Source: Pavona decussata (taxonomy: Eukaryota). Taken from it: 64,000 nt of DNA. The stretch covers positions 2,604,001 to 2,668,000 of the forward strand of contig CDRNST010000025.1 of the NCBI GenBank assembly GCA_977016875.1. Direction: 5' to 3'. Shown piece after piece: positions 779-58,977 of the stretch. Position 1 is the first letter of the stretch; each line of letters opens with the position of its first letter. The notes under the pieces are model-generated. The model was given only the letters and a program-made list of their open reading frames with translations. It was not told where the DNA came from and made no database searches. The translations under genes and the position numbers were made by a program.

Positions 779-1562
779 GAATCTAGACATTCCAAGTTGT
801 GGAAAGACATGGAAGAAACAGGCGTCCTTAGTATGCAACTTGTTGAACACGTATTTTCGAAGTATTCTCAGCAAGGCGTACCCAAGGAGGACATTTTGAA
901 TATGATGGAGCATTTCGGATTGATAGTCAAGTTTGCGAGGTCTCCAAGTGATATACTCTACTTTGTACCAGCGCAACTGAAGACGCCACCTAAAGCCCTT
1001 CGAAAAATGGAACCTTCGTTGTCCGACCCATGTCCACTGTATCTTCACTTTTTGGAGGGTTTTGTTCCTCATGGCCTCTTCTTTCAGCTGGGGTCAAGGT
1101 GTTCTCGACGGTGCCCCGCTAATAGATTCACGCAGCCTCCGAAATTTTATGAGGGAGCTGCGACGTTCTTTCTCGAAAAAAAGTTCAGGTACCAACTGAC
1201 TCTTTTGTGCAAGAAAAGGTTCATCAAGGTTGTCCTGAAAAACCAGACAAAGCAAGACGATCAACTCTCTCGGACTGAAAAAAAAGAGGTAGCAAGTTTG
1301 GTGCGATCGTTTCTAGAAGGTGAATTAGAAAATATGAAACAAGAGCTGCCGTGGTTGAACAATTTAAAGTATGAATTGTGTGTAGAGTGTCCTTGCTGTC
1401 CGGAGGAAGAAACCAAATGTGGAAACCACAGTCAAGTCTTTTGTGCACATGAAGACTGCATAAGCCTTGTCAAAGTTATGCCTAGAGGGAGTTTAAGCTG
1501 TTGCTCAATTTGTTGTCAAACACCGAGCCTCCCCAGACTGGAAAAGTGGTTCTCGGCAAAAG
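779..1562 (+). CDS. Copy A exon: C-terminal part of COR domain plus Cys/His-rich segment
   Basis: ORF 797-1585 with ILNMMEHFGLI, YFVPAQL and VPHGLFFQL motifs typical of COR. Acceptor ttgacag, donor aaag|gtgaag. The paralogous exon follows the Roc exons in copies B and C. Confidence 0.85.
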
Positions 1563-7500: not shown

Positions 7501-10500
7501 TACATCTCTAACAAAGAATTATGGACTTTGCTTGCGGAAAAGTAGGTACCTCAAAAGAACTGCTGATTGGTAAGATTACAGGACAAAGGTTTGAGAACTC
7601 CCGTAATGTACCATCACACGTGTACATCCCCAATGTCCATCTAGAATAAATTAAAATGAGAGCTTTTGTTTGAGAACCTTATGCTGGCTTGTACTGTAAA
7701 AAACCATTACATAAGATAAACAGCTAAATATCAAGCAGTGAAAGCGAAAAACAAGTAAAATATCGAGCGATGAAACATACACTACATTTGATGATGCGAC
7801 CGAGAATGTTCACTTCCTGCGTCCAGATCCAAGTTGATCAAATATTCATTACGAAACTACAAAGCTATTTTTACTACCTTATTAAATATTCTATTTCAAT
7901 GCAAAGCTATTGAAGCGCGCTTGTAAAGACTGGTTCTTAAATATAATTTCCAAAGTGAAAAGCGAAAGCTCTCGGAACAAAAACTGTCGTCTGAAAAATG
8001 CACTTTTTTATCGGCGACATTTCCATCCGTCTATCCAAATGATCCCATAATCCATCACTCGTTCCAGTCTTCCCGTAGTTTCAGGAGTGGGAAATTATTA
8101 GTTCTTTTCTGTTAAAAGAAGATGTTGACTTCCTAGTTCTATTTCATATATTTTAAGAAAATAGGACTATTGGTGATATATTCAATTTTCAAGAATTTGT
8201 GTCTTTTTGGAAATATTCTCATAGGTTTAATTTTAAAATGTGTTTTTTGGCGCTTTAGTTGAAGGGTACACTTTGAAACTGCCATATTTTGGGCGCCTTT
8301 AAGGCATTTTGCTGTCACGTTATTGCGTTATTACAAGAATAATAAGTCGTATTTCATTGACAGGATTAGCTTTTTGAAAATAGTGGGTGATGTCACAAAT
8401 TAGCAAAAGTATTACTTTATACAGCCTTGTTGACGTTACAGTAAGCACGCCCTTCCTTACTTTCTTTTCTTAAAATGCCACATGCAATAACGAATTGTGC
8501 AAAGTTTCTGAAAAAATTTCATTACAGCTTCTTTTTTGGCTGGAATTACCTTAGTATCACCTATAATCGATTTACTCTATTGATAAAGGGATTGACAGAT
8601 TTAAACGCGTGTTTAACGCTCAAACATTCGTTTAACGGGCTTATTTTTTTTTGTAGTTTAGTTCAATGAAAAATCAAAAGTTCAATAACCACACAATCAG
8701 TTCAAAAAAGACACTTCATTTCAGTGACAGTAGACCTGAATTGTAAGAATAACTATAGGTTTTTTTATTATTATTATTTCATTTGGACAGGTAGGAGGAG
8801 AGGGGAGAGGGTTTTACGGGGTCAATGAAAAATCAAAAGTTTAATAGCCACACTACCAGTTCAAAAACCACACGTCAGTTCACTGACAGTCGACCTCAAT
8901 TGTAAGAATAACTATAGGAGAAGTGTTTTTTATTCCATTTGGACAGGAAGGAAGAGAGGATAGAGGATTTTACGGGGGCAAGGTCCATATTTAGAGCAGG
9001 CAGAAAGTACGAATAAAAAAAATAGTACCTATACATTCACAAATAATGGTAACGGGCTTACACTGACGTATTTAAAAATCTATTGTCCATTTATCCATTG
9101 TTTTTCATTGTAATCATATTTAGCATCAGCTGTCAAATAATGTAGCTTTCTCTTGTACTTAGCTCCTCTTTATGTTCTTTCGTCTTGCTTGTGCGTCAGA
9201 TCAATGGACCGAGAAAAACAAGTCTTCCTCTGTAGCATGACAGCCATAGGTATTAGAACATGAAGAAACTTCTTCGTGCTGTTTTAATACAGATTTTATT
9301 GTTTATAACATGTTTATGCCCATGGATAGCAAGAAGAACTGGGCAAACGGAGCTGAGGAACAACTGAAACAACCAGAACCGCAAACAAACGAACAAGCGG
9401 GTGAGCGAAGGGACAGCCGAATGACCGAGTTAATGATCAAACTTTCCACGGGGCGTTCACCGACGAAATCAAACGAACGAAAAACCGAGTCAGGAACGAA
9501 CTCGCGAAACTAGATGAACGACCGAGTGGACAACCCTTTTGTTTGCAGTCATAAGCGCTTTTAACGTTGCATTAAAATATTAGAAAATCGATCCTTATAA
9601 GCGCTTATGACTGCAAACAAAAGATAATACTTTATTGAACACTCCCCAGAGGGGCTTTTCGGTGATCAATACATCATGTTTAAAATGATGTGTTATAACC
9701 ACGTGAAGCTTCAGAACATTTAGAAGGACTAATACGGTTTTTTCTTACTCTTCAGCGAAGCAAAGTTTACGTGATGTCGAGCAACTGCAATGTTATCCTA
9801 GAAACGCCACCAGGATGACTGACGTATCAAGGAGGTTGGACGAGATTGCTTCAGACAAAGGCTTCACAGTTTCTGACAATGAGGGATTAGGAAATTGCAT
9901 GTTCTACGCATTGTCAGAACAACTTAGCCTTGTGAAAGGAATTCAAATCTCTCATAACGTTTTGAGGCAGCACACAGTCCAGTATCTCGAAAGGAACCCT
10001 ACACTAGTAAGTAGCTGAGAGTGAAGGAGCTTGGAACACGACGACTTTCTAACCCTCACTTTCAGGAAACTGACTGTCAATTCATGTCCAAAATGTAACA
10101 TAAATGAAATATAGATTATAAAACAAAGTCATCGAAAGTAGGATTCCAGCTCAATTCATCGTTTATTTTGCAGGAATAATGAATTGGACAGCATATTTTA
10201 TTCCAAACACTAGACATTAATAGAGCCTCTGAGAGTACTTACTGTTCATTAAATTGGTGCACTGAGGTCTGACGAAGGGTTATTGGAGCTAAACTGAAAT
10301 TTTGTCAGAATATATATTCAGAGCATCTCACCTTCATTCTTACAGAAATTAGTGAGATTGAACTTCTGATCATCTTCGGAAGGAAGTTTTCACGATCAAC
10401 CTTAAGAAATGGTCAAAAAGTAGAAACAAATTCCTTGCTAAACATTGCCTTCCTCCTTATGAGCTAACATGCGCTCCAGCCGAATATCATGCCAGCCTCA

Positions 10501-13500
10501 TTCCCATGGTCTCTCCTCTTTCCGTCCAGGAGAGACCCTGGGAACGAGGTTGAAATCATGCTTATTCTTATTATTTTCATCTGTTCAGTCAGATGGGACG
10601 AAATTGTTCAATTTTGTTCACGGGTGTCAGTCTTGGTCTGATTATCTAACAAAGATGTCAGCAGATGGGACGTGGGGTGATCACGTGATTCTCCATGCTG
10701 TAGCAAACTGCTATGAAATATGCATTCATGTGATTAGCAGTCTGTCACCCAGTCATGACGTAATCATCAGCCCAGAACAAAGTCGTGATGTTGAAAGCAG
10801 CAACTGGCTTGTGCTGGGGCACTTACACGAGCACCACTATGTCAGTCTTCAACCCAAACGAGGTGAATAAGCTGTCACAGTTTAACTTTGAAAAATAGGT
10901 ATTGGCAGATAAAAGCTAGTCGGTTTGACCTACGAGAAGATAACCAGAGCCAAACTGAACGATAAATTGAGTAAAGTTAATGCGAGCCAATTCATATCTA
11001 GTTTTTGTTACTTGTATCATCCGCATAGAATTTCGATTAGTTTACACTGTAAAATATTTCGAGGGTTCTTTTAATTTTAGGCATTTCTACAAAAATTTAT
11101 GGATGCCAACTTTTAAAATGGTTATACAAGCAGTCAACTCCTGCTAAAACAGAGGCTTTCAGGACCACGATTTAGTGCGGTGCGTAATATTACCAATTCA
11201 TCCTCGCAGGGTCTTCATTCCTATCCACAATAACAGGATGTCTGTAATGCAAAGGTGTTCGTAAGAGAGAACTTAACTGTATTTTATTACAGTTGAATGG
11301 TTTGATACGTGGTTAAAAGGGGTGTGAGTGATAGTTTGCTAAAAAAATTCGACGCGCTCTAAATAAGCTTTTTCTTTTACAGTTTGTTATTTTCATGTTT
11401 AATCTAAATGTCTAAATAAGTAAACTAAGGCTATCACTTAATATGCTACGTAGAACGTAGTATTAATTGGCAAAGACGACACCTTCTGGGGGTACTGAAA
11501 ATTAACCAAGGTCTCTGTCTTGCTTATGTAGGATGAACAGTATGTCGAACAGTATGAAATTCGCAGTTTGAGTGTTGTAGCGAAGGTTGTGAGAAGAGTA
11601 TGGAAGTATGAATGACGTCATTGAGAGTTGTTACCTGCGCACGTGATCAGAGTCTTGAGTTCACTCGGAGTGACTGGTCAATAAAGTTTAGCAAACTGTT
11701 TTGGCGAGTAGCGGACAAACACAGGGAAACTTTTGCAGCAAAGCAAAATTTGTCCGATGAAAAAATTCCTTCGCCGACCGTTGCAAGTGACCTCAACCAG
11801 GTTAAAAAAGCTAGATCTTTGTTGTGATGTGAAAAGGAAGAAACTATTAGTCCAAACGTGTTGTCCATAGAAATCCTGTAATGGTAAGTAATCGACTACA
11901 ACTAGCAGTGAAGCGACAGACATCCTTTCACATTTTGAGATCAGAAAATTCCATCGTCTTGTTATTCGTGAACGGCTCGTAGCGTAGCGTACTCTCTTCT
12001 CTTCTTTCTTTCTCGCAGGATAGCATGGAAGGACGAAGATGTTAAGGAATTTTTCATACAACTCTTTTTCTGTGAACGCTGTCTCCATTATCTCAAACCA
12101 CTGACCACTTCGTGTCAGTGTCGAAAACCGTAGTTCAACAGAAGTACAAGCGAGAACTGATGCAATAAATAACAACCTGTACCTCCGCCTTTTCTATTCT
12201 TCTGTAAAGCAGACGAGAGAAAGGTCGATTTCAGAACTTCCTGCTGAAACACAAGCGCTCTTCTTATGAGAAGAAATTCTGAGAACTTTTCGTCCGCGAT
12301 GTTTTTACAGAGGAAGCAGCATGCGCACTAGGCAAGAATCGAGTACGGATCAGTACGCTGGCCGAGATGTTGAGCCGTTTACACGTACCAAATCATAATT
12401 GCGCATCGTTTGGCACGGTAGAAAAAAGGATGCGTAAATTAATAATCAGTAATATGTTTTTGGTACGCGTACCACATTCACCCGAGCCGTGCCAAACATT
12501 TTCTGTCGTGTAAATGGGACTTTAACTCCTACCGTGCAATCTATCAGAGGGAAGCTTCTAAGCAGTGCTTTGCGGTGCTAGGTTTCTTATCCTTTGCAAG
12601 GCGCATAGGCATAGCGGTTTGGTATTTGGCTGAAATCCTGTTCATACTCAAATGAAAGATATAGGGTGGTACTTCAGTGGATGTTTTTTGTTTGTTTGTT
12701 TGTTTGTTTGTTTTTTTATGTAATGGCTCCAATGAAAAGTCTTGCATGAAGTACCAAGATTGGGACCATATTAGAACTATAAAACTGCTGAGCGCTACTT
12801 TCCCTTTCAACTGAGAGGTTCTAAAATTAAAGATTAGTAAAACCTTCCTTAAAAGGGGCATCTAGAAGTTCATGCATATCAGAACGATGGAATGGTAATA
12901 TTTGAATCAAACACTTACAGGTAGTTCTGGAGATGAAGATATGCCAACGCCAACATCCAAAAGAGGGTCATCATGTCCCAGTCCTGGTCAGTGCTCCAAG
13001 CGAATCAGACTTCTGGGCAACACAGGTAATAAGTTCAGAAGCTTTATGCAGATGTAGAACGTCACTGTCAGACGAAATTGAATGTTTGGGTTTTAAATTG
13101 CATTTTATTGACATGACCACCACATATACAACTATCACATTCTAAATTTTGTATATCAAGTTTTTGAAAGTTTGTATTAGTTGTATATATGTTACCAAAT
13201 CTATTGATGATTTTCAACGTCCACTCCGCCATTAATGCCTTTCTGTCTTCCAACAAATCTCCAAATATACAGATTTCTCTGCAAATCAACGATACGAAAA
13301 GGAATAAAAATAGACTGACGAGCCTTTTGCCTTCGTAGGTTTAGCGAAAGAAGGATGTCCGTCTGATGATGAACTAGAACGTCTATCAATGAATGTAGAG
13401 GAATGGAGGCCGCTTGGGCGTCGACTGGATTTTAACAATGCACAGCTGACTGGGTTTGATAAAGACACTGAATTATGGCGTGAGAAAGCCTTTGCCATGC

Positions 13501-13622
13501 TAATGGCGTGGAAGCGTAGAGAAGGCAAATCTGCCACATACAGAGTCTTATTTGAAGCATTGCGTCATGAATTTGTAAATCGTAAAGATTTAGCGGAGAA
13601 AATTTGCTGCCACTCAGACTGA
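779..13622 (+). CDS. Copy A, 5'-partial multi-exon gene: (Roc outside window)-COR-Cys-rich-GT4 glycosyltransferase-OTU-Death
   Basis: Exons 779-1562, 2276-2409, 3229-4441, 7228-7323, 9756-10006, 10589-10862, 12921-13025 and 13339-13622 all have AG/GT boundaries and compatible phases. They total 3141 nt (1046 aa + stop) with no internal stop. Confidence 0.85.
2276..2409 (+). CDS. Copy A linker exon preceding the glycosyltransferase (phase 1-0)
   Basis: ctgtag|ctgtcc ... actcag|gtagag. Conserved as a 134-nt exon in copy B (24098-24231). Confidence 0.75.
3229..4441 (+). CDS. Copy A exon: GT-B fold glycosyltransferase, CAZy GT4 / Glycos_transf_1-like
   Basis: ORF 3142-4491 has N-terminal EWRSSKGGVS, VVHT, FGR..LKG and the EX7E motif PSRTEGFGLTALEALSAG. 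Splice sites tttcag|gag and catg|gtgaga. Confidence 0.9.
4976..5281 (+). mobile_element. tRNA-derived repeat (tRNA-like core 5090-5162) bracketed by approximately 60-bp inverted repeats
   Basis: Acceptor stem GGCTTGA/TCAAGCC, A box TAGTTCAGTTGG, B box GGTTCGAATCC. Arms 4976-5038 and 5166-5226 are reverse complements. Absent from copy B. Confidence 0.7.
7228..7323 (+). CDS. Copy A 96-nt linker exon (GTSDDDLNEDSRAPTKSKEGLSHKGKRHTEDT), phase 1-1
   Basis: atacag|gtactt ... acag|gtaaga. Same length and open in B (27833-27928) and C (51317-51412). Confidence 0.75.
8661..8977. repeat. Intronic tandem duplication, 2 x about 160 bp
   Basis: tcaatgaaaaatcaaaagtt ... ttttacgggg occurs at 8663 and 8822. 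Confidence 0.8.
9756..10862 (+). CDS. Copy A OTU-like cysteine protease domain, two exons (9756-10006 and 10589-10862)
   Basis: Cys box DNEGLGNCMFYALSEQL, central YLTKMSADGTWGDHVILHAVA, His box LGHLHEHHYVSL. The two exons are joined by a phase-0 intron. Confidence 0.88.
10493..10552. mobile_element. About 60-bp hairpin MITE (also at about 30064-30123; absent in copy C)
   Basis: cagcctcattcccatggtctctcc ... ggagagaccctgggaacgaggttg inverted ends, with an atcatgc-like direct repeat on the flanks. Confidence 0.65.
12921..13025 (+). CDS. Copy A 105-nt linker exon (GSSGDEDMPTPTSKRGSS...), phase 1-1
   Basis: ttacag|gtagtt ... acag|gtaata. Copy B (31455-31553) carries an in-frame 6-nt deletion. 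Confidence 0.72.
13339..13622 (+). CDS. Copy A terminal exon: Death domain
   Basis: WRPLGRRLDF, EKAFAMLMAWKRREG, ATYRVLFEAL and NRKDLAEKI match the death-fold consensus. Acceptor cttcgtag, stop TGA. Confidence 0.88.
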
Positions 13623-18720: not shown

Positions 18721-18758
<38 letters not shown>

Positions 18759-46400: not shown

Positions 46401-48341
46401 GGATTATCTCCCTTCTTTGCCCTTCAGGTGGTTTAACTTTGAGAAGGTCATTAAGGCTTTGATTGCCAAGAAAACGTATTACCTAAACCTGCAACAACTC
46501 CAAACTATTATCCAGGAAGTGTGCTTTGTCAGGAATGAGGACGAAATTGCCACCATGTTGGATTTCTATCACGATCTCGGAATTATCGTAAGACACCACA
46601 ACACTGTTGTACTACAGGCCCAGTGGTTGATTGACGTGTTTAAACAACTCATAACAATCCGTCCGTACAACGAAATGGTAAGAACCTGACAGAATAAAAA
46701 GTCCAAAAAGTGAGCAGCCGCGTACCTTATTCTTGGCTGCCTTTTACCGTTGGGTGCCATGGTGGGTTATCTCGGGGGGGGGGGGAAACCCAGCAGGTTA
46801 AAAGTTTTCCCAGTAGATTCTGAAAGAATATTTTTTTTGCTGGAGAGGTTTCAATATATTTTTTCCATGTTAAACTTTTTGTAAAACAATTCGTATTTCA
46901 AATTTCTCGCATGACGATTTAAAAGTCTTGTGATAATTTGCCTTACACATTTTTATTACGATTTTTTTTTTGCATTTTGCACCAACCTTTTTTTGTTACT
47001 TTTCTTTATAAGTACGTAAATTATGATCATCCGGGTGAGTGAAGTCCTGAGAAGGAGTGTTTGGGGGTTGCTTTGACTGACGTCAAGTGAATCGTGGAAC
47101 GTCAGTAGGTGGCATATATGTCTCTGGTTGTTATCCTGACTGGTCAACGACGTCGAGATGTTATTGGCTGTGAAGACTAAAAAAAAAGGGATTGGTGCGT
47201 TTCGATCCGTCTTTTGTTAGTCAAAGACAAAAGGTCCGTGGGTCTATTGTTTGCTTGTTACGTTGATGCCTGGCATCTGACCATTTACAGGTTTATCTGT
47301 GTATGTTACACGACGAGTATTCGCAAACAAACTTTTCGTTCAAGTTCTTCTTAACCCTATCTAGCCCGGGCTTTTTTGTCTTCATAGCTTCTCAAGTATA
47401 AAACTTATAACAGTGAGAGTTAAAGGATAGATGTAAGTCTGAAGATGTTTCCTTTGAGGTCCGTAGTAAGAATTGATGACGTCACATGAAGCAGGAATTA
47501 CACCACGATTTCAAAGAAATGGTAATCTAGGAACCGCCACCTTGGATGTCTTGATTTCTCCCAAAACCTCAGAGTTAAAAAAATGTTAGATGACTTTGTC
47601 TGCAAGAAAGTCAATTTTGAATCATTAAAAACCGAAATCTTCCTGTTTCTTAAAAAGAGGCCTGGCAAAAATAGATTGCTATTGTAACATCAAATTCAGT
47701 GAGCCTGATTTACCATGCAAAATCGTTCCCGGATAAATTTCTTGAAAAGTCACGAACTTTCGTGGCATTTGTGCAAAAATTAAAAAATGTTGTGTGCTTA
47801 AAGTCCATTATTAACCTGTCGCGATCATTTTCTCGTTTTTTTATCTTCCACCTTTGCACCAGAGAAAGGCTAATTTATACAGATACTTACCAACGAAAGA
47901 AGATCTGTCTGCACTTTTTCCCCAAGAGTGCTATAGCCTTAATAAAGTGTTCACATCCTCTGCTTCTCATAACCAGGCTTTCCTATAGTTGCCTGAATGC
48001 TACAATGGGCTATTTTCTGAAACAAATTGCTGTCATTCTTCCCGAATTTGGGCCGACGTTCCCATGAAGTAAGTCAGGTGCTTGTCTATGTGTCTTGCTT
48101 TCAGCTAAGTTCTTGAGTATGCATGGAAAGATTACTATGGAACTGCGACTTTGAAGTAAAGTATTTATTATTGAGTTCTCAAACTCATTAATAATACATA
48201 AAGTGAGCAGCGAATAGCTGACATTTGGTTCAGCTGGATGAATCTTGATACCCAATGAAACGCCAGATCAAGATGTTAATGGTCTCTATGGGAGTTAAAA
48301 ACCTTTTTTGATCTGAGGTCAAACACTTGCAGTTTAATAAG

Positions 48342-48372
<31 letters not shown>

Positions 48373-51300
48373 CTTTAATAGTAACATCCTCGTGAGGTTT
48401 TTCAGGAACTATTTACAAACTATTTCCAATTTATAAAAGCAAAAATGACAATAAAAACTCGAAATCACAATTTATGCTGGTGTTTTACTAAAATTCAAAG
48501 CTTATGAAGGAAATGTCTGCCTCAATAACATGGTAGGATTATTTATGCAAATGTTCCAGCAGGAAATGTTTAACACAAGCAAGTAGACGTTTCCTCTTTA
48601 TTCTGACTCCTTGCACCTTAATTACATCTGAGAATGTTCGTGAACGAACGCTTACTGATGTTTTAAAAGCTAAATGAAAAACAAACATTTCACACTCAAG
48701 CCTGTCGTCAGTTTTACTGACGTTTTACTTTTCCCCGACCGTCACTCATGATCCAGGATTGTTATAATGTTAAAATGAAAACCCGTGCAAAGCAGCCCCT
48801 TGAACTTAACTCCCCAAAAGGGAAGTAGTAAATGCACGGTTAAATGTGCCCTACCCATAATGTGTGATGACATCAGCCGCTCGTCGTTGGTATCGTTTCA
48901 CATTTTGTGTGAAGAAACAAAGAAGCGTTTGCTAAATTTAGTGCTCTCTATTCAAAACTTTCTTTTCAGACATTATGATCATGTCACAAACTCGGATTTT
49001 GTGCTTTATCAGGTGTTTCAAACAACTGTTTCTCGGTTTCCCTGATTATGTAAATAACCTAATCTCGTTTTTGATGGTGTCTTCAATATAGCTCGCCTCA
49101 GCGGATCATAATTCAGAAATTAATCAGCGAGTAGTATGATATCGCTAAAACAGACCTAAAAATAAGATTGACGTGTAAACCCAACTTGCTGTGTTTCACA
49201 TTACTAACAGGATACACTGCGGGTGTACTTTATATAGGGGTGTTATGCATTTTTTTTCTTCGTATATTTCTCATAAGTAAACATGCAAGAATGTTTCCTT
49301 GGTGTGTTTAGATGGTTAAACGACCTTGATATAGTGTCTCAAAAAATCCTCCTTATTGATGTTGTTTTAATTTTTTGACAGGAATCTAGACATTCCAAGT
49401 TGTGGAGAGACATGGAAGAAACAGGCGTTCTTAGTATGCAACTTGTTGAACACGTATTTTCCAAGTATTGTCAGCAAGGCGTACCCAACGAGGACATTTT
49501 GAATATGATGGAGCATTTCGGATTGCTAGTGAAGTTTGCGAGGTCTCCAAGTGATATACATTACTTTGTGCCAGCGCAACTGAAGACGCCACCTAAAGCC
49601 CTTCGAAAAATGGAACCCTCGTTGTCCGACCCATGCCCCCTGTATCTTCACTTTTTAGAGGGTTTTGTTCCTCTTGGCCTCTTCTTTCAGCTGGTGTCAA
49701 GGTGTTCTCGACGGTGCCCTGCTAATGGATTCACGCAGCCTCCCAGATTTTATGAGGGGGCGTCGACCTTCTTCCTTGAGAAAACTTTCCGCTACCAACT
49801 GACCCTTTTGTGCAAGAAAAGGTTCATCAAGATTGTATTGAAACACCAAAGAACACGAGACGAGCAATTGCCTCCGACCGAAGAAGAAGAAGTAGCAAGT
49901 CATGTGCGAATGTTTCTGGAAGATGAATTGAGCAATATGAGACAAGAGCTGCCCTGGTTGAACAATTTAAAGTATGAATTGTGTGTTGAATGTCCTTGCT
50001 GTCCGGAGGAGGATATCAAGTGCGCAAACCACGGTCAAGTCTCTTGTGCACATGAGGACTGCATGAGCCTTGTCAAGGTTATATCTGGAGGGTGTTTAAG
50101 CTGCTGCTTCCAATGTTGTCAAACAGCGAATCTCCCCAGACTGGAAAAGTGGTTCTCGGTCAAAGGTGAGGACAATGTGTCGTATATGGTTAAATTAAGA
50201 TGATCGATATAAGTCAGTTTTGAAAATGGTTTAATGACTGGTTGCCTTCATGAGCTGTAAGTTATACAATCAAGACCTAAACGATTGGTTAAAGATACTA
50301 GTAAAAGAGTTATCTCTTCAGAACCCTAGCCAGAACAATTAAACCCAAAAATGGACGGGTAAATGCGCACGTCCACCGTTAGTTGTCTATTTACGATAAC
50401 AATCGCTATCGGTCTTCTTATTTTGTGAATAAGGTGAAAAATCCTTTAAAAAAATGCTGATAGCTATTAGATCCAAGACAGGGTATTCAAACCCCACTCA
50501 ACAACCTTATAGGAAAAAAAAACACTAAACATACAGGTAAAATTGAATGTTGATATTGTGGAATAATGCTAATTTACTAACTGTATTTTTACTGTGTCCT
50601 AATATCAACAAAATAATTTTAGAAGATTCGGTTGAATTGCAGTGGGTATCTGTACTGCCCAAAATGTCTTGCGTCGTCAGCTCGCGCACACATAAAAAAC
50701 ATTTCGATTTGTATTTTTTTGAGGCTAAGAAAATTAAATTATTGGTCGTCTTCTTCTTAACGTGCATGGTGGCTTATTATTTCATATTATATTAGCTATT
50801 TCTAGACCGGGGGAGTGGAGGGGATTGGTTGATCCTGCCCGCACCGACTTTGAGTATTTTTTATATGTGAGGAAGCGCCCCAAAACTTCGTCACTTTTTG
50901 TTTAGATAGTTATCTGGAATCAATTTTTTGTGCGTGCAGATGCCCAAATGGCCCCATATCCTCGGTACTGTCATTTGTTTCGGCACCTTTAAAGCATTTT
51001 ACTGTCACTTTGGTGCGCTCTTTAAAGAAAAATACTGTCTAGTGTTTCATTGATAGGGAGTAATGGCTTAGTATTTTAATGCTGTTGTCACAAACTTTAG
51101 TTTTTTAATGCTGTTGTCACAAACTAGCAAAATTGTTATACACTGCATGCAGCCCTAATAACGTGAAAAGAGTCTGATGAAATTTCTAATGTAATCCTGG
51201 GCTGGATGTAGTTAGCTACCGTGCAAATTTTCCAAAGAAAATTAATTACAACTTCTTGTCATCTACGCGTGTATCAGTGTAGTGGAAGGGAAAACTTTAT

Positions 51301-54300
51301 TAATTGTTTAATACAGGTACTTCAACTGATGGTTTGTTTAAAGAAAGCCAGGCACATACTATTTTGAAGAGAGGATTGTTACACAAAAGGAAAAGAGACG
51401 CAGAAGACACAGGTAAAACATCTGAATCTCTGTTGTTTTTGTGGAAAAACACTCACTAAGGCGTTGATATCAGTAAATACAGTACGCAAAAACCTCGGAA
51501 AGCAGGCATTATTAATTTCGTCGTAAGACGTGCAAGAGATTAACTTGAATACATGTTTCAGTTAAGCATACATGAGAAGTTCTTATTAGTTATTGATTTA
51601 CAGGTACGTCAAGTGATGATTCGCCTGAACAGACGCCAATATCTTGTAAATCCAAGAGAGTGTTGTCGCACCGCACTTATAAAAGTTCCAAACGGAAAAA
51701 GTGTGTGGAAGTCTCAGGTAAAAACGCCTAAATCTGTATTACTTTTGTAAGATAAAGTAATTGATTTTTCTGTGGCCTAATGAAGACAATCATTCAAGGA
51801 GATTCCATTAAATTGCACTACACATCCATACTACGGTACTTTCTTGCGTTGCAAACGCGTGGGAGAGAATGGGGCAATTATTAGTCCTTTTCTGGTAAAA
51901 AAAAAACATAGTGACTTCCTATTTTTTTTTTTTTTTTGCACGTATTTTAAGAAAATACGACTCTTAGCGATATCTTCAAATTTCAAAAATTTTCTTGTCT
52001 CAGTTTTGAAATATTCTCAGGATCAGCTATTACAATTTGTTATTTAAGTGCTTCATTGGATGGGTGCAGTAACCCAATACAACCCTATGTTTTCGTTAGT
52101 GTCATACTTTAGCAGTTTTAAGGCATTCTACTATCACGCTGTTACGTCGTTACGTTCTTACAAGAACAATAAGTAATATTTTATTGACAGGAATAGCTTT
52201 TTGGAAGTAGTGGGTGACTCATCTCTCAAGGCTTGGTTTTTTAGTAATGATGTCATAAACTAGCAAAGTTATTATATACTTCATGCATCCCTACAGCGGA
52301 AAACAAGCAGTAACCCCCATTTTTTTCTCTTCAATCTTGATATACTAGATATAATAAGCAACTGTGCAAATTTCTCACGAAATTCATTAAGTTTGTTTTT
52401 CGGTGGAAATGCTTTAACATCACCTTTAGCTTGTAAACATGCTTGCCTNNNNNNNNNNNNNNNNNNNNNNNNNNNNNNNNNNNNNNNNNNNNNNNNNNNN
52501 NNNNNNNNNNNNNNNNNNNNNNNNNNNNNNNNNNNNNNNNNNNNNNNNNNNNNNNNNNNNNNNNNNNNNNNNNNNNNNNNNNNNNNNNNNNNNNNNNNNN
52601 NNNNNNNNNNNNNNNNNNNNNNNNNNNNNNNNNNNNNNNNNNNNNNNNNNNNNNTTCATTTGTTCCGTCCTTCTTTCTTCCTCCCTTATTCCCTGTCTCC
52701 CTTCCTTTCTTTCCTTCTTTCTTCCTTCTTCACTTCTTTCTACCTTCTTTCCTTTTTGCCTTCCTTTGTTTGTTTCTTCCTGGTATTCTTTTCTTTCTTC
52801 ATTGACACTTTAATAAAGTGATTGATTTATTTTGTTTCATTAACAAGATGCTGCGCGCATTGAAAGGGAATTCAATTGGCCTTAAGTAACTATCAACACA
52901 TGCATCATTCTTTCTTCGATCAGTACGTCCAAACATTGTAATAAAGGGAGCGAAATTAGATAGACTGTAACACCGACTTATGGTACAGTTGAGCTGCATC
53001 CATCGTATCTTTTATGTATGCAGAGATTGCAGAGACAGACGTGCATGAAACACCGGGAAGAATGATGTCATTATTAATCTATTCCCCCCCCCCCCCCCTT
53101 CCCAACCCCTTACTAGGACTACTGAGTGCCTGCATAGTTGAGCTCGAACTTTTTGGTTACCAATTCCTGACATTAAGCCTTGCTTTGTATGGTCTGATTA
53201 ATATTTTAAGGATGCCTCAGTTAGTAATGGCAACTATAGTAAGTTATATATGAAAGTTCGTCTACCTGATGTGTTATAATCACTTGGAGCTTCAAAACAT
53301 TTAGAAAGTCTAATAAGGTTTTTGCTTACTCTTCAGCGAAGCAAAATTTACGTGATGTCGAGCAACTGCAACATTATCTCAGGAACACCACCAGGATGAC
53401 TGACGTATCAAAGAGGTTGGAAGAAATTGCTTCAGACAAAGGCTTCACAGTTTCTGATAATGAAGGATCAGGAAATTGCATGTTTTACTCATTGTCAGAA
53501 CAACTGGACCTTGTGAAGGGAATTCGGATATCTCAAAACGCGTTGAGGCAGCACATTGTCCAGTATCTCGAGAAGAACCCTACTCTGGTGAGTCGCTTAG
53601 GGTGAAGAATCTTGGAAGATGTCGATGTCAATTGATGACCATGATGTAACTGTAAGGGAATATAAATTTTAAAAAAAGTCATCGCATGTGAGATGCCAAC
53701 TCAATTCATCAAGTATATTGTGGAAATGATGAATTGGGAAGAATATTTTTTTCCGAATACTAGACAACATTTCATCTTTTTGATGGTAGCTACTGTTAAT
53801 TAAATTGGTGCACTGAGGTACACGGAAAAATTGGGCAAAACCGAAAGATTGTCGAAACTTCACTAATATTGAGGACATTTAATGTTCATTCTTACAGAAA
53901 GCAGTGAGATTGAGCTTGTGACCATCTTAGGAAGGTTTTGGAAAATCTTAAAAAAGACAGTGTACAATGAAACTTCCAGCAACTTCAAAAAACTGGAAGA
54001 AAAGAAAACCAAATGCTTTGCTAGGCATTGCCTTCCTCCTTTTGAGCTAACATCCGCCTTAACCAAATATGATGCTTATTCTTATTATTTTCTTCTTTTT
54101 AGTCAGATGGCACAAAACTGTTCAATTTTGTTCACGGGTATCAGTCTTGGTCTGATTACCTAACAAAGATGTCTGCAGATGGGACGTGGGGTGATCACGT
54201 GATTCTCCATGCTGTATCAAACTGCTATGAAACATGCATTCATGTGATTAGCAGTCTCTCAGCCAATCATGACGTAACCATCAGCCCAGAACAAAATCGT

Positions 54301-54573
54301 GATGTTGACAGCAGCAACCGGCTTGTGCTGGGGCACTTACACGAGCACCACTATGTCAGTCTTCTACCCAAACCAGGTGAATAAGCTGTCACAGTTAAAC
54401 TTTGAAAAATAGGTATTGGCAGATACAAGCTAGTCGGTTTGACCTACGAGCAGATAATCAGGGCCAAACTGAACGATAAAATGGGTAAAGTTAATGCGAG
54501 CCAAAAGCATATCTGGTTATTGCTACTTGTATCATTTGCATAGAATTTCGATTAGTTGACACTGTATAATATC

Positions 54574-54654
<81 letters not shown>

Positions 54655-57216
54655 GCGGCAGATATCGCAGATGAGAGTTTATTATACGGGCCCATTGATT
54701 ACATTCCTCCTGGCGTTTTTGACCTGATCGACGAGAAAATGATCTTTGATGCTGCATCCAAAACAAAGGGCTCAGCCGGGCCGTCGGGGATGGATGCCGA
54801 GCTATATCGAAGAATCCTTTGCTCCAAGAATTTCAAGGCTGAAGGCAAGGTTTTGAGAGAGGAGATTGCCTTTTTCACAAGAAATCTGTTAAAGATCGCT
54901 TACCACCCGTCTTTGCTAGAAGGCTACACCTCTTGCAGACTCATCCCCTTGGATAAAAACCCTGGAATACGACCTATTGGCGTTGGCGAGGTCCTGAGGC
55001 GAATAGTTGGAAAAACTATCGCTGGATTTTTGAAGGAAGAGATCAAAGACGCAGCGGGCCCCCTTCAGGTTTGTGCAGGCCATAGTGCAGGCTCAGAGGC
55101 CGCGATACATGCTATGAGTCAAGTGTTTGCAGAAGAAGGAACGGATGGTATTTTACTGATAGATGCAAGCAATGCCTTTAACCAAATGAACAGATCCGTC
55201 GCCTTAGATAACATCCAGATAACCTGCAAGGAAATGTCACTTTACATCATTAACACCTACAGAAGCCCGTCGAAGCTCTTTATTTGCGGCGGAGGTGAGA
55301 TACTATCACAGGAGGGTACAACGCAGGGGGATCCCTTAGCCATGCCCTGGTACTCGGTCAGTACATCTATCATGATCCAGAGCTTAAGGATAAGCACACC
55401 AGGTGTTAAGCAAGTATGGCTAGCCGACGACTCTGCGGGGGGTGGACTAATCGTGCCCTTGTATAATTGGTACAATCACCTGAGTCAGGAAGGAAAGAAG
55501 TATGGTTATCTAGTGAATGGACCAAAGAGCTGGCTGATTGTCAAGTCGGACGTACTTGCAGTTGAGGCAAAAAAGGTGTTTGGAGACGAGGTTAATATTA
55601 CAACTGAAGGTCAGTGCCACTTAGGGGCCGTCATCGGATCTCAAGAGTTCAAAGATCAATATTGTCGGGAAAAGGTCCTTGGATGGAAAGGAGAACTCGA
55701 AGCCCTATCTGAGATAGCAAGGAGCCAGCCTCATGCAGCCTACACTGTTTTCACGAAGGGTTACAAATCCAAGTTTACCTATTTCATGCGCACAATAGAG
55801 TCGTTTGAAGATTACGTTGACCCTATTCAAGAGGCGATTGACGACTTACTCCTCCCAACACTATTCGGTCAAACGGAGCCCCTCCCTAGCAATCTGCGTC
55901 AGCTTTTTACTTTGACACCCGCTCAAGGAGGGCTTGGCGTACCTGACTTACGGTTTGAAGCTCCATAGCAGTTTGCTGCTTCTACGACAATAACAGCATC
56001 GCACGCAGATTCCATCACCAAACAGAGCACTTTCATGGTGGCAGGCGAGAGGTCCACGGAGGAGTTAAAAAGACAACATCAAGCTTCAAAAATTGCGTTG
56101 GTGAAATCGAGAATGGAAAGTATTGATTCCACTCTACCCTCGGATCTGCTGCGGTCAGTTAACCAATCGAGAGACAAGGGTGCGAGCTCGTGGCTTACCG
56201 CAGTACCTCTTGTCGATCAAGGCTTAGTGCTGAATAAACAAGAATTCAGAGACTCTCTGCGTTTAAGGTATAATTTTCCCCTGACTGATTTACCAAGCAA
56301 GTGTGTTTGTGGGGAGAAGTATACCGTCTGCCATGCCCTGTCATGCAAAAAGGGAGGGTTCGTGGCGCAGAGACATGATGGCGTCCGCAACTTACTTACC
56401 TCTTTTCTTGGTAAGGTTTGCACCAACGTTGAAGTCGAGCCACAACTACAACCTCTCGACAATGAGCAATTCAACCTCAGAAGCGCGGTGACAAGTCCGG
56501 ATGCAAGACTGGACATGAAGACAGGGGGCTTTTGGTCTCGAGGAGTTACAGCATTTTTCGATGTCAGAGTAACGCATGTTAACTCCAAGTGTAACCAGAG
56601 AAAAGCAACATCGACAATCTTTAAAGAGCAGGAAGAGGAGAAAAAGCGGAAGTACCAACAGAGGGTGCTGGACGTTGAAATGGGATCTGTCACTCCCCTA
56701 GTTTTTGGAACCAACGGTGGGATGGGAGCCGACTGCAATTGCTTTCTCAAACGCCTAGCCGAGAAGCTCTCAGAAAAGAATGAGGAACCTTATCACATTA
56801 CTATCACTTGGATTAGAACATTGCTTTCTTTTGAGATTTTAAGGTCGGTACACACATGCGTAAGAGGCTCCAGGACACCTTTTCACAAAATTCCATTTGA
56901 GGATTTCATTGATGACTGCCGCTTAAACGCTAGCCAAGCGTGTCTCCGCTAATTTTAGAAAGTGAATGATGGCGTGACGTTGTAAATTAGTATTTTAGGA
57001 TCTTTTTAACAACTTTTTTTATTTCATCAAAATTTTAGTCTTACTATTGTTAAAAAATTGTGCTTGAAAATAGCTCTGTTGTGCTTGGAAATAGTCGCTT
57101 TTTTTTTAATCGAAATGAATTTTAAATATTGAATTGTAAATAGGTTTTAATAGCTCTTTTTTCTACTTTTAACTTGTAAATATCAATTTTGCTTGGAATA
57201 TTATAATAAAGAAAGA

Positions 57217-57298
<82 letters not shown>

Positions 57299-58977
57299 TC
57301 TAGGCATTTCTACAAACATTTGTGGATGCCAACTTTCAAAATATTTAATGTCAACTCCTGCTAAAATAGAGGCCTTTAGGACCACGATCTAGTGCGGTGC
57401 GTAATGTTACCAATTCATCCTCGCTGGGTCTTCATTCCTATCCACAATAACAAGATGTCTGTAATGGAAAGGTGTTCGCAAGACTGAACTTAACTGTATT
57501 TGATTACAGTTGAAGGGTTTGGTACGTGGTGAAAAGGGGTGTGAGTGATAGTTTGCCACAAAAATTCGACGCGCTCCACATAAGCTTTTTCCTTTACAGA
57601 TTGTTATTTACATTTTTATTGTTAATATCTTGATAAGTAAACCAGGGCTATCACTTAATGTGCTACGTAGAAGCTGTTGGTATATTTTGGAACAGCGTAG
57701 TATTAATTGGCAAAGAGGACACCTTCTGAGGATACTAAAAATTAACCAAGGTCTCTGTCTTGCTAGTTGCGACTAAAGAACAGTTTGAAAGCAGCTCGTA
57801 TGGCGCTATCCCCAACCTCTCTGAACGCTCTAGCAATCACTCTTCCCAAAAAACACATGCACTGCCAAAGGATGGGGAACAACAAGTCATTGAACATCTA
57901 AACATTCAGTGATTTTCTACGTTCGTTATATGTACAATGAACAGTATGAACAGTGTGAAATTCGCATTTTGATCGTTGTAGCGGAGTTAGAAGAGTTTGC
58001 ACGTACAAATGACGTCATTAAGAGGTGTAACTGGCGCACGTGATGAGAGTCTAGAGTCCAGTCAGATTGACTGGTCAATAAATTTTTTCAAACTGTTTTG
58101 GCGAGTAGCGGAAAACACAGGAAAATTTTTTGCGGGAAAGTAAAACTTGTCCAATGAAAATCTGTCGACGCCCGTTGCAAGTGACTTCAACCAGGTTAGA
58201 AAAAGCTAGAATTTTGTTGTGGTGTGAAAAGAAAGGAGGTATTTGTCGAAAAGTGATGTCCATAGAAATCCTGTAATGGCGAGTAATCGATTACAAATCG
58301 CAGTGAAGCGGCTGGCGTGCTGTAATATTTTGGGGTCAGAAATTCTCATCGTGACATTTGTCACGCTACTCGAAACGGCTCGTAGCGCACTTCTTAGTTC
58401 TTGCCGCAGTTTGACGTAATCTGTTTGTTATCAGACAACAGACGCACTTTTTACATAACTAACGCCTTGAAGACGGTGGTTTGCTGTATTTATTGGCCGA
58501 TATTTTCAGGGATTTTGATACATAGCAAATTACATGTGCTTGCACTGTTTTGTTCTTGTTAGGTTTTTCAGGGAGTCATTACTTCGAAGGGATTTTAGTG
58601 ACAGACTTTAATTTTGCTGCTTGCTTCTTTCAAACAATGGCAACCATCGGTACTTTACGTTATTCTTATTTAAATGCTCAAGCACTCTGTTCTTTGTAGT
58701 TGCAGTTAAAGATGGCAGTCCATCTCCTGATGAATTGGAGGAAGTATCAGTGAGCATTGGCAAATCTTGGCACGCGCTAGGACGTCGGCTAAAATTTGAC
58801 AAAGCAAAGCTGGATGGGTTTGACCATTGTAAATGGGAGTTAAGCGAGAAAGCATATGAAATGCTGATGAAGTGGAAACAAAAGGAAGACTCAGCTGCAA
58901 CGTACCAAGTTTTACATGAAGCATTGTGTCACAAATTCGTAAATCGTACAGATTTAGCGGACAAAATTTGTCGTTAA
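39034..58977 (+). CDS. Copy C, apparently complete gene: TPR x10 - Roc - COR - Cys-rich - OTU - Death (about 1568 aa ROCO protein)
   Basis: Exons 39034-40462, 43179-43564, 43881-43940, 44312-44371, 45346-46070, 46428-46677, 49382-50165, 51317-51412, 51604-51717, 53337-53587, 54103-54376 and 58700-58977 total 4707 nt, in frame with canonical sites. An in-frame TGA at 39013 precedes the ATG. The gap at 52449-52654 could hide an exon. Confidence 0.85.
39052..40260 (+). repeat. Coding tandem repeat, about 10 x 120 bp
   Basis: agtattaaacatggtaaagaaagc or a close variant recurs at 39181, 39301, 39421 ... 40141 with an exact 120-nt period. Confidence 0.95.
41021..41880. mobile_element. Copy C specific insertion of about 860 bp with an internal direct repeat
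   Basis: Absent at the homologous B site (about 16470). cggaatgc/gcattccg sub-terminal inverted repeat; about 110-bp direct repeat at about 41148 and 41311. Confidence 0.55.
43179..43564 (+). CDS. Copy C Roc GTPase exon 1
   Basis: VPSEIKARG...RARIMLIGQDRAGKTSL (G1) and QSTNGIEV (G2). Confidence 0.9.
43881..44371 (+). CDS. Two duplicated 60-nt phase 0-0 microexons (43881-43940 and 44312-44371), SGFTAAKEDESMEKKSQVNQ
   Basis: gaatag|tctggt ... aatcag|gttggt occurs in both units of an approximately 431-bp tandem duplication. Confidence 0.6.
45346..46070 (+). CDS. Copy C Roc exon 2
   Basis: LDLWDFAGQHLYYASYPVFLS (G3), PVFIVGTHADK (G4), FFSIDN (G5 region) and PYMGEEVP. Confidence 0.92.
46428..46677 (+). 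CDS. Copy C COR exon 1
   Basis: RWFNFEK, MLDFYHDLGII and QWLIDVFKQLIT. Confidence 0.88.
49382..50165 (+). CDS. Copy C COR exon 2 plus Cys/His-rich segment
   Basis: ORF 49400-50203; 784-nt exon, the same length as in copy A. Confidence 0.88.
51317..51717 (+). CDS. Copy C linker exons (51317-51412 and 51604-51717), both phase 1-1 with basic clusters
   Basis: acag|gtac ... cag|gtaaaa boundaries; 96 and 114 nt, both open. Confidence 0.68.
52449..52654. other. Assembly gap (206 N)
   Basis: Run of N followed by CT-rich low-complexity sequence. Confidence 0.99.
53337..54376 (+). CDS. Copy C OTU exons (53337-53587 and 54103-54376)
   Basis: DNEGSGNCMFYSLSEQL, GTWGDH and LGHLHEHHYVSL. Confidence 0.88.
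54574..54652. repeat. (TTA)n microsatellite at the 5' flank of the retroelement
   Basis: About 26 TTA units. Confidence 0.95.
57218..57297. repeat. (TTA)n microsatellite / 3' tail of the retroelement
   Basis: About 26 TTA units with one interruption. Confidence 0.95.
58700..58977 (+). CDS. Copy C terminal Death domain exon (divergent type)
   Basis: WHALGRRLKF, EKAYEMLMKWKQKE, ATYQVLHEAL and NRTDLADKI. Acceptor tttgtag, phase 1. Confidence 0.85.

Follow-up and report, generated by a model that had tools for sequence, protein, structure and literature searches.

In the study by Kaur, Iyer, Burroughs, and Aravind (2021; PMC8195603), which also treats GT4 expansions in metazoans, GT4 is listed among the effectors of Roc-COR conflict systems in bacteria, and its supplement contains the amphioxus entries 'ImmLRR+LRR+sGTP+OTU+GT4', 'CARD+sGTP+DEATH+GT4', and 'DED+DED+OTU+GT4+DEATH'. 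The bacterial LRR-AP-GTPase(Roc)-COR-effector systems described there resemble the gene array analyzed here in pairing a sensor made of repeats with a Roc-COR switch and a C-terminal effector that varies and can be GT4. They differ in that the listed proteins are prokaryotic or from amphioxus, and the study was computational only. Roc-COR-Death-TIR genes of sea anemones were called 'novel immune genes' (van der Burg et al. 2016, PMC5094078), and the brown-algal LRR-ROCO genes, an expanded family with a diversifying repeat sensor, were proposed to be immune receptors (Teng et al. 2024, PMC11378527). The latter belong to an unrelated lineage, their LRR sensors are encoded with a single repeat in each exon, and GT4, OTU, and Death outputs are missing (PMC11378527).

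Roc-COR followed by a Death domain, as in the array, is also the arrangement of DAPK1 and of cnidarian kinase-Roc-COR-Death(-TIR) proteins, which carry an N-terminal kinase instead of TPR repeats and have neither GT4 nor OTU. DAPK1 has ankyrin repeats. Roc-COR-Death members from Nematostella and Montipora align with the array genes across Roc, COR, and Death at 36-62%.

The closest relatives are annotated in corals. LOC144666872 of Oculina patagonica (XP_078384406, 2176 aa; isoform X3 1776 aa, uncharacterized), a RefSeq prediction, features TPR-Roc-COR-A/B-GT4-OTU in the same order as copy A of the array and is collinear with it exon by exon (50-69% identity, about 42% for the TPR part); it lacks a Death domain, and its TPR repeats number as many as about 17. 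Like copy C, LOC111336388 of Stylophora pistillata (XP_022798204; also deposited as 'Tetratricopeptide repeat protein 28') combines TPR-Roc-COR, OTU, and Death without GT4, but two Death domains precede the OTU (TPR-Roc-COR-Death-Death-OTU), whereas a single one follows it in the array. The same backbone (42-65% identity to copy A), with an LRR instead of a TPR sensor and no Death domain, recurs in Stylophora, Pocillopora, Porites, and Oculina as LRR-Roc-COR-GT4-OTU proteins that go by the names 'OTU domain-containing protein' or 'pats1-like'. Coral NACHT-LRR NLRs equipped with GT4, or with GT4 plus OTU, share the effector pair and the repeat/NTPase/effector layout, but their switch is a STAND ATPase (NACHT) rather than a Roc-COR GTPase.

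The novelty of the architecture, as implied by the earlier note on this DNA, is not supported: the annotations of Oculina, Stylophora, Pocillopora, Porites, Acropora, and Montipora already include closely similar domain orders. The same applies to the combination of Roc-COR with GT4: the conflict-system logic and the amphioxus combinations sGTP+OTU+GT4 and DED+DED+OTU+GT4+DEATH already appear in PMC8195603. The full six-module order was not present in any annotated protein among about 240 best relatives, and TPR-Roc-COR-GT4-OTU-Death was not found in the portion of the supplementary table of PMC8195603 that was covered. No new category is opened: RefSeq and one comparative-genomics paper already contain the architecture class.

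In the window, i.e., the whole stretch of DNA analyzed (64,000 nt), three tandem copies were delimited by self-comparison, namely A (249-14129), B (about 14250-32680), and C (about 33560-58977), with DNA identities between copies of 70-96%, introns included. One of them is intact (C), one is seen with an intact 3' half (A), and one is dead (B). All array domains are located on the plus strand at the places where they had been reported before, position 779 being the first base of the copy A COR-B exon and 58977 the last base of the copy C stop codon. On the contig, the array comprises 12 same-strand copies over about 365 kb and is larger than first described. These copies combine the modules differently, GT4 and OTU each being present in some and absent from others and the Death type varying. 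Across the genome, more than 60 related Roc-COR loci occur. Of the at least three copies plus the start of a fourth claimed earlier, A, B, and C were recovered, B being a pseudogene, while copy D contributes only upstream non-coding sequence to the window, its first coding exon starting past the window end. Feature coordinates are compiled in Table 1; exon limits were set from more distant paralogues, the indels between copies A and B being too few to delimit exons.

Table 1. Features of the tandem ROCO gene array in the window (positions in nt; phases refer to splice sites).
Feature	Position	Strand	Basis or remark
Copy A COR-B exon	779..1562	+	Phase 0 in; strongest donor 1562/1563 is phase 1
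Copy A GT4 exon, intact, 404 codons	3229..4441	+	PF20706 299 bits; stop-free; SSKGGVST and Ex7E (EGFGLTALE)
Copy A OTU exon 1, Cys motif GNCMFY	9756..10006	+	Pfam OTU profile positions 4-39
Copy A OTU exon 2, His motif HHYVSL	10589..10862	+	Pfam OTU 25.8 bits; homology to paralogues starts at acceptor
Copy A Death exon with stop (type 1)	13339..13622	+	PF00531 43.7 bits; phase-1 acceptor
Copy B TPR exon remnant	15845..15965	+	Repeat array deleted, 40-codon tail remains; donor GT changed to AT
Copy B Roc N-terminal exon (P-loop)	17695..18080	+	
Copy B Roc C-terminal exon	19317..20048	+	Frameshift near 19930, then stops
Copy B COR-A exon	20431..20680	+	
Copy B COR-B exon	22610..23390	+	
Copy B GT4 exon, broken	25022..26232	+	2-bp deletion at 25612/25613 vs copy A; 13 stops downstream
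Copy B OTU exon 1	28968..29218	+	
Copy B OTU exon 2	30160..30433	+	Acceptor AT in place of AG
Copy B Death exon (type 1)	31875..32158	+	
Copy C first coding exon	39034..40462	+	ATG, about ten 40-residue TPR-like repeats, linker, phase-1 donor; Pfam TPR_12 E 7e-48
Copy C Roc exon 1 (P-loop GQDRAGKT)	43179..43564	+	Pfam Roc, motif
Copy C Roc exon 2 (DFAGQ, THAD)	45346..46070	+	Pfam Roc, phase-2 donor
Copy C COR-A exon	46428..46677	+	Pfam COR-A
Copy C COR-B exon	49382..50165	+	Phase-1 donor AAAG/GTGAGG
Assembly gap	52449..52654	.	Inside copy C COR-B to OTU-N intron
Copy C OTU exon 1	53337..53587	+	Stop-free translation, splice phase
Copy C OTU exon 2	54103..54376	+	Stop-free translation, splice phase
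Retroelement-like insertion, copy C OTU to Death intron	54572..57294	+	Open frames 470 and 305 aa, weak RVT_1 match
Copy C Death exon with stop (type 2)	58700..58977	+	Pfam Death; 54% identical to copy A Death
Copy D upstream region, probably non-coding	62603..63938	+	Homologous to copy C 34737-36067; D ATG 1242 nt beyond window end

Domains were assigned by running Pfam profiles on plus-strand open frames and by searching the exons singly. Within the window, matches span 3142-4491 (GT4-conflict, PF20706), 9707-10015 and 10463-10867 (OTU), 13314-13619 and 58621-58977 (Death), seven stretches at 39034-40485 (TPR_12), 43235-43591 and 45259-46071 (Roc), and 46399-46689 (COR-A). Both Roc exons matched the Roc profile, the motifs GQDRAGKT, DFAGQ, and THAD (G1, G3, and G4) are present in copies A and C, and the GTPase carries an insert of roughly 100 residues. 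The COR-A exon alone (E 5e-7, 30.1 bits) stays under the cut-off of 35.3, and can be aligned residue for residue to the COR-A of annotated ROCO proteins that lie above it. No Pfam match was obtained for the COR-B exon; an AlphaFold model of the copy A exon, computed from a 40-row alignment (pLDDT 85.6), retrieved exclusively Roco, LRRK1, or LRRK2 structures among the top 20 PDB matches, the best being the Roco COR of C. tepidum (3dpu/3dpt), followed by LRRK1 and LRRK2 (Foldseek E 3e-5, TM 0.4-0.5).

The GT4 exon covers profile positions 2-384 of 385 at a score far above the cut-off of 26 bits and features the Ex7E motif of retaining GT-B enzymes; its nearest solved structures are distant (GlgA, MshA-like, WaaG; E 6e-7). 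The two OTU exons cover positions 4-39 (20.7 bits) and 55-102 of PF02338 (cut-off 23.3), and exon 2 had no sequence match in the PDB. The catalytic Cys and His motifs are kept, and the OTU domain is a putative cysteine protease. The Death exon of copy C reaches 51.3 bits and, like that of copy A, exceeds the PF00531 cut-off of 22.6; among solved structures, the RIPK1 death domain is the closest relative. No Pfam match to NACHT or NB-ARC was obtained on any exon scanned. The array genes have Roc-COR as their NTPase and are not NLRs, though they may work in an NLR-like manner.

Copy C (39034-58977) is an intact gene of eight exons and 1458 codons encoding TPR-Roc-COR-OTU-Death without GT4. Its exons are stop-free, no stop codon arises at the junctions, and the summed length is 4377 nt (3 x 1459). 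The ATG is preceded, 18 nt upstream, by an in-frame stop, which is located behind a likely 5'UTR acceptor. From the TPR exon through the two Roc exons, COR-A, COR-B, and the two OTU exons to the Death exon with its stop, the junctions are of phase 1, 0, 2, 0, 1, 0, and 1, phase 1 not being common to all introns. A GT4 exon hidden in the assembly gap was ruled out by collinearity and by the COR-B to OTU spacing of 4688 nt, as in the GT4-less copies 3 and 5; the junction marking the absence of GT4 (50243-51264) is located upstream of the gap in unbroken sequence. The nine exons of copy A, including GT4, are all intact, its TPR, Roc, and COR-A exons lying upstream of the window. The proposal that the exons splice in consistent phase into a TPR/Roc-COR/GT/OTU/Death protein was borne out by domains, phases, and collinear coral proteins. 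Copy B is a pseudogene with five disabling lesions (Table 1).

The junction between COR-B and GT4 is ambiguous, as the best COR-B donor is phase 1 and the obvious GT4 acceptor (3228/3229) is phase 0. A phase-0 donor is found 7 nt from the phase-1 donor, reading GTAAAA in copies 1, 2, 7, and B and GCAAAA in copy A; the phase-0 alternatives of copy A are 1555/1556 (GC) and 1573/1574. The GT4 exon is phase 0 in and 1 out, and would be a symmetric 1-1 cassette only with use of the internal acceptor 3295/3296. For a small phase-converting linker exon, only weak candidates were found (best 2276-2409, donor score 3/6), and such an exon was rejected because the homologues have space for no more than about 10-28 residues at this place. 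A Logan contig with a 93% identical GT4 (L002) was considered as mRNA and rejected, being collinear with genomic DNA with its introns kept. A homologue search for transcript-derived proteins of the same species found none.

Splice phases, collinear homologues, and selection lead us to the reading that each intact gene encodes one protein consisting of TPR, Roc, COR-A, COR-B, GT4 (in some copies), OTU, and a C-terminal Death domain, as predicted from the sequence. The exons are collinear, with contiguous residue numbers, with annotated cnidarian proteins (Oculina XP_078384407-10, Montipora XP_068753960, and Nematostella XP_032219879), and also align to single-exon Roc-COR proteins; the copy A GT4 corresponds collinearly to residues 1183-1585 of Oculina XP_078384407-10 (63%). 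Together with the view that the ROCO-family genes form a lineage-specific tandem set in the genome of a coral-like cnidarian, and that these genes look, by analogy, like immune or cell-death receptors, this reading is given a probability of about 0.7.

Alternatively, the proposed protein could be a chimera of neighbors, with GT4 as an independent intronless gene nested in a TPR-Roc-COR-OTU gene intron, with the Death exon as a short gene of its own, or with both. The GT4 open frame indeed has its own upstream ATG and was called as a stand-alone protein of 425 aa in an ORF collection, many coral GT4 proteins are stand-alone, the COR-B/GT4 phases are mismatched at the strongest sites, and the closest Oculina protein stops after OTU without a Death domain. 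However, a polypyrimidine-AG acceptor precedes GT4 and a GT donor in phase with OTU exon 1 follows it, annotated proteins from at least five coral genera carry GT4 fused between COR-B and OTU with matching linker lengths, and this genome has three ROCO clusters, unrelated to one another, in which GT4 comes after Roc-COR. Moreover, the Death exon has a phase-1 acceptor, no start ahead of the domain, and is present behind 12 of 12 copies, and Roc-COR-Death is a conserved cnidarian arrangement, so that a chimera appears unlikely. Less credible still is an array composed mostly of decaying pseudogenes from a recent segmental duplication without present function. Besides the lesions of copy B, the split COR-B match of copy 5, the partial Death match of copy 2, and the retroelement and assembly gap in copy C would be in line with decay, but the lesions of copy C are intronic, and in copies A and C all exons are open, the catalytic motifs intact, and the splice sites canonical, save the copy A COR-B to GT4 donor. 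Copies A and C are under purifying selection (887 codons; pN 0.057, pS 0.177, pN/pS 0.32, Fisher p 4e-17), which argues against a functionless array; for the GT4 exon, copy A versus locus L001 yielded a pN/pS of 0.25.

Real genes might also serve purposes other than pathogen or non-self sensing, as DAPK-like regulators of stress, autophagy, or developmental cell death, with the expansion reflecting dosage or neutral duplication. The core Roc-COR-Death is the one found in DAPK1-type proteins, the enzymatic exons are under purifying selection, and brown-algal ROCO genes respond to many stresses besides infection (PMC11378527). Copy number, pseudogenes, and module swapping are, by contrast, typical of conflict genes, GT4 is a member of a 'conflict' Pfam family, and NACHT NLRs carry the GT4-OTU pair as well. 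Furthermore, the N-terminal array is made up of 6-10 TPR-type repeats of 40 residues that are nearly identical, differing only at positions 4, 27, 28, 33, 36, and 40, and pN/pS amounts to 0.6 for the TPR part versus about 0.3 elsewhere. Such a regulatory role is considered improbable, though less so than a chimera. Birth-and-death evolution, as suggested earlier, is supported by one pseudogene, the presence or absence of GT4, two Death types, and 6-10 TPR repeats.

For the receptor reading, a mode of action can be proposed from the domain logic common to NLRs, bacterial Roc-COR (AP-GTPase) conflict systems, and DAPK1. The TPR array would bind a ligand or guard a host protein, and sensing would release the Roc-COR nucleotide switch, resulting in a change in conformation or oligomeric state that exposes the outputs. 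GT4 might then glycosylate a target molecule, OTU might remove ubiquitin or a ubiquitin-like tag, and the Death domain might recruit death-fold adaptors, leading to apoptosis or NF-kB-type signaling. In GT4-bearing copies, the two donors of phase 0 and phase 1 could decide on GT4 inclusion. Placing Roc-COR in the switch position of an NLR-like layout, as put forward in the earlier note, fits the occurrence of the same GT4-OTU pair on NACHT-LRR NLRs of other corals, and this NLR-like reading is a reasonable one, of a kind already published. More tentatively, and at somewhat less than even odds, the genes may represent a distinct class of animal intracellular receptors beside the NLRs, in which a Roc-COR GTPase couples a hypervariable TPR sensor to interchangeable outputs, both enzymatic and death-fold, and loci toggle the glycosyltransferase via 5' splice sites 7 nt apart.

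The putative immune gene repertoires of corals are very large and poorly understood. The array offers a compact natural experiment, since near-identical genes within 365 kb vary in GT4, OTU, Death type, and TPR number. It is convenient for asking whether animals use Roc-COR GTPases as receptor switches, which molecules are glycosylated by conflict-type GT4 enzymes, and how ROCO and NACHT receptors exchange effector cassettes.

Pfam scans of the + strand open frames in the window (G000:C25:2604001-2668000, taken from a 602-Mb assembly; G+C ~39%) recovered every domain named in the earlier note. Gene copies were delimited by self-comparison of the window at the protein and DNA level and lie in tandem on the same strand. 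Of the proposed three or more repeats and the start of a fourth, the three tandem copies (A, B, and C) were confirmed, whereas copy D is represented inside the window by its upstream region only. The introns of the window copies were likewise 70-90% identical, which points to recent duplications. Copies C and D are separated by a spacer with two palindromic stretches, 60830-61000 (~170 bp) and 62212-62557 (~350 bp), with ~80% identity each.

Positions of gene copies, Pfam matches, copy C exons, and copy B lesions in the window
Feature	Position	Strand	Remarks
Copy A	249-14129	+	self-comparison; 5' part upstream of window
Copy B	~14250-32680	+	self-comparison
Copy C	~33560-58977	+	self-comparison
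Copy D	62603-63938	+	self-comparison; upstream region only
GT4-conflict PF20706, intact	3142-4491	+	Pfam, E 6e-89
GT4-conflict PF20706, second match	25007-26183	+	Pfam; broken across two frames
OTU	9707-10015	+	Pfam, profile positions 4-39
OTU	10463-10867	+	Pfam, profile positions 55-102
Death, first	13314-13619	+	Pfam
Death, second	58621-58977	+	Pfam
TPR_12 array	39034-40485	+	Pfam, strong
Roc, piece 1	43235-43591	+	Pfam
Roc, piece 2	45259-46071	+	Pfam
COR-A	46399-46689	+	Pfam
C, TPR exon	39034-40462	+	opens with ATG; phase out 1
C, Roc exon 1	43179-43564	+	phase out 0
C, Roc exon 2	45346-46070	+	phase out 2
C, COR-A exon	46428-46677	+	phase out 0
C, COR-B exon	49382-50165	+	phase out 1
C, OTU exon 1	53337-53587	+	phase out 0
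C, OTU exon 2	54103-54376	+	phase out 1
C, Death exon	58700-58977	+	with stop; end of chain
B, lesion 1	15845-15965		TPR array deleted; last 40 codons remain
B, lesion 2			donor of TPR remnant exon AT, not GT
B, lesion 3	near 19930		frameshift, Roc exon 2
B, lesion 4	25612|25613		GT4 disrupted by 2-bp deletion
B, lesion 5			OTU exon 2 acceptor AT, not AG

Because the introns of copies A, B, and C were too similar for exon delimitation, exon limits were taken from distant paralogues, namely copy D and the clusters on contigs C114, C144, C49, and C73 of the same assembly, with which similarity persists in exons only. This comparison yielded eight exons in copy C and nine where GT4 is present, and all conserved-block boundaries carry canonical splice sites. 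The exons of copy C were searched singly, and their joins were checked by phases and lengths. Each exon was free of stops in its own phase, the junction-split codons read GTA, CGG, GCG, and GTT, and the exon lengths total 4377 (3 x 1459). The phases out (1, 0, 2, 0, 1, 0, 1) contradict the former statement that all introns are phase 1. An in-frame stop, located directly 3' of a good acceptor, precedes the ATG of copy C by 18 nt; therefore, the conserved region further upstream most likely represents the 5'UTR and promoter, the protein starting at the TPR array. Copies A and D show the same layout.

An exhaustive search with the COR-B exon returned ~60 proteins collinear with Roc exon 1, Roc exon 2, COR-A, and COR-B, their residue numbers being contiguous across the exon junctions. 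Among them were annotated multi-exon proteins from Montipora, Nematostella, Exaiptasia, Branchiostoma, and Glandiceps, as well as proteins of ~700-800 aa encoding Roc-COR in a single open frame. In the Montipora and Nematostella proteins, COR-B leads directly into a Death domain alignable to the window Death exon. An Oculina patagonica protein (XP_078384407-10, 1776 aa) is alignable to the TPR, Roc, COR-A, COR-B, GT4, and both OTU exons of copy A in the same order, with identities of 50-69% for the Roc-to-OTU exons and ~42% for the TPR array; LRR-Roc-COR-GT4-OTU proteins of Stylophora and Pocillopora are likewise collinear with copy A from Roc onward. All close relatives are scleractinian. The COR-B exon had no Pfam match; it was modelled by AlphaFold from a 40-sequence alignment (pLDDT 85.6, pTM 0.85), and the 20 best PDB matches of this predicted structure were COR domains of C. 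tepidum Roco, LRRK1, and LRRK2.

The junction between COR-B and GT4 allows two in-frame solutions. In copy A, the GT4 acceptor 3228|3229 is clear, in phase 0, and homologous to that of the paralogue on C49, where COR-B and GT4 are joined in phase 0. It mismatches the strongest COR-B donor of copy A (AAAG|GTGAAG, 1562|1563), which is in phase 1. One solution employs a phase-0 donor 7 nt upstream of the phase-1 donor (window 1555-1563 and homologous sites), which reads TCG|GTAAAA in the GT4-bearing copies 1, 2, 7, and B and GCAAAA in copy A, as compared with GTCAAA in all four GT4-less copies compared; this difference may stem from the use of alternative donors or from nothing more than common ancestry. 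The other solution combines the phase-1 donor with an internal phase-1 acceptor (3295|3296), which is kept in all GT4 copies, and yields a symmetric GT4 exon of 1146 nt. In homologues, 10-28 residues separate the EKWF motif from the first GT4 strand, which is compatible with both solutions and rules out a longer linker exon. Copy A is in frame throughout with either solution (1786 or 1766 codons). The GT4 donor 4441|4442 is in phase 1 and matches OTU exon 1; thus, GT4 at 3229-4441 is not the 1-1 cassette formerly described, its acceptor being in phase 0. Judging from these phases, in-frame inclusion or skipping of GT4 could still occur.

The single N run of the window (52449-52654) is located in the intron between the COR-B exon and OTU exon 1 of copy C, where a GT4 domain might have been concealed. 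Collinear matches place this gap opposite the copy A intron segment 8390-9686, well downstream of the GT4 position in A, and the GT4-holding stretch A 1640-7175 is replaced by C 50243-51264, which is uninterrupted sequence. The COR-B to OTU spacing of copy C (4688 nt) resembles that of the GT4-less copies 3 and 5 (5256 and 4795 nt) as opposed to 6.6-9.7 kb in GT4-bearing copies, and tblastn with the copy A GT4 gave no match in this intron, which together argues against a concealed GT4. The exons on either side are phase-compatible regardless of the gap content. The intron between OTU and Death of copy C harbors a retroelement-like insertion (54572-57294) in host-gene orientation and without counterpart in A and B. 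Of its open frames, one (470 aa) matches RVT_1 weakly (E 4e-4); the other (305 aa) has no match in Pfam. In the intron between the two Roc exons of copy C, the segment 43721-44130 is repeated directly in tandem at 44154-44560 (410 bp, 93% identity).

All nine exons of copy A are open with intact motifs, and all eight of copy C are open, its insertion and gap both being intronic. Copy B is dead, carrying five lesions. Copies A and C feature the Roc motifs GQDRAGKT, DFAGQ, and THAD and the OTU motifs GNCMFY and HHYVSL; the GT4 motifs are SSKGGVST and EGFGLTALE (Ex7E). The comparison of A and C covered 887 codons of Roc, COR, and OTU and gave a pN of 0.057 and a pS of 0.177 (ratio 0.32, Fisher p 4e-17), with dN/dS values of 0.25-0.47 per exon; the copy A GT4 gave a ratio of 0.25 against a 93% identical GT4 locus (L001) from another assembly. 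The TPR exon is under weaker constraint (0.59). Across the 21 TPR repeats from A, C, and D, the 40-residue unit is near-identical apart from positions 4, 27, 28, 33, 36, and 40. The number of repeats varies among the copies (~7, ~10, and ~7). The end of the copy A TPR exon, upstream of the window (L003, G000:C25:2591800-2592000), encodes ~50 consecutive Glu residues, which are absent in C and very few in D; hence, the acidic TPR-Roc linker is variable in length.

Searching the assembly exon by exon revealed 12 same-strand copies at C25:2.325-2.689 Mb, of which five (1, 2, 7, A, and B) contain GT4 and ten contain OTU; in copies 4 and 6, a divergent COR-B is followed directly by Death. The Death exons are of two types, 54% identical to each other (type 1: copies 4, 6, 7, A, and B; type 2: copies 1, 3, 5, 8, and C), and three of the four combinations of GT4 presence and Death type occur, which indicates exchange between array copies. 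In the mosaic copies 4, 6, and D, COR-B is only ~50% identical to the rest, as against 84-92% for Roc exon 1, and their TPR and Roc exon 1 regions, introns included, share 80-92% identity with the main subfamily. The 5' half has thus been homogenised across subfamilies, which suggests gene conversion or unequal crossing-over limited to that half. Further ROCO clusters were located on C49, C144, C73, C114, and C24, together with many single-exon Roc-COR genes, several having GT4 ~1.2 kb downstream (C289, C106). The rest of the genome contains more than 60 OTU exon copies (70-76% identity), in many cases with a GT4 exon ~2 kb upstream (C64, C162, C144, C204). Based on this arrangement, the GT4-OTU pair looks like a mobile cassette common to several receptor families.

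Homologue searches and Pfam scans uncovered several related architectures. Oculina has both TPR-Roc-COR-GT4-OTU and LRR-Roc-COR-GT4-OTU proteins, the latter type being present also in Stylophora, Pocillopora, and Porites. Stylophora additionally has TPR-Roc-COR-Death-Death-OTU, and proteins of Acropora and Montipora combine Roc-COR with both GT4 and Death. All of these proteins are "uncharacterized" or auto-named. None of the ~240 best relatives combined all six modules in window order. Kaur et al. 2021 (PMC8195603) described a GT4 expansion in Acropora, bacterial LRR-AP-GTPase-COR systems using GT4 as effector, and amphioxus architectures with small GTPase, OTU, GT4, and Death. Sea-anemone Roc-COR-Death-TIR proteins were marked as novel immune genes (van der Burg et al. 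2016, PMC5094078), and an immune-receptor role was proposed for brown-algal ROCO proteins (Teng et al. 2024, PMC11378527); our literature search found no ROCO protein with GT4 or OTU that had been studied functionally.

The proposed NLR-like nature of the window gene holds for its layout and even its effector cassette, both common with coral NLRs: NACHT-LRR proteins of Oculina, Porites, and Pocillopora, likewise "uncharacterized" or auto-named, carry the same GT4-OTU pair. However, lacking a STAND NTPase, the gene falls outside the NLR class. The Death exon has RIPK1 as its nearest solved Death domain. In the most likely working of the gene, the TPR array would bind a ligand or guard a host protein, thereby releasing the Roc-COR nucleotide switch, which would expose the outputs: GT4 may transfer sugar, OTU may remove a ubiquitin or ubiquitin-like tag, and Death may act in homotypic Death-domain recruitment.
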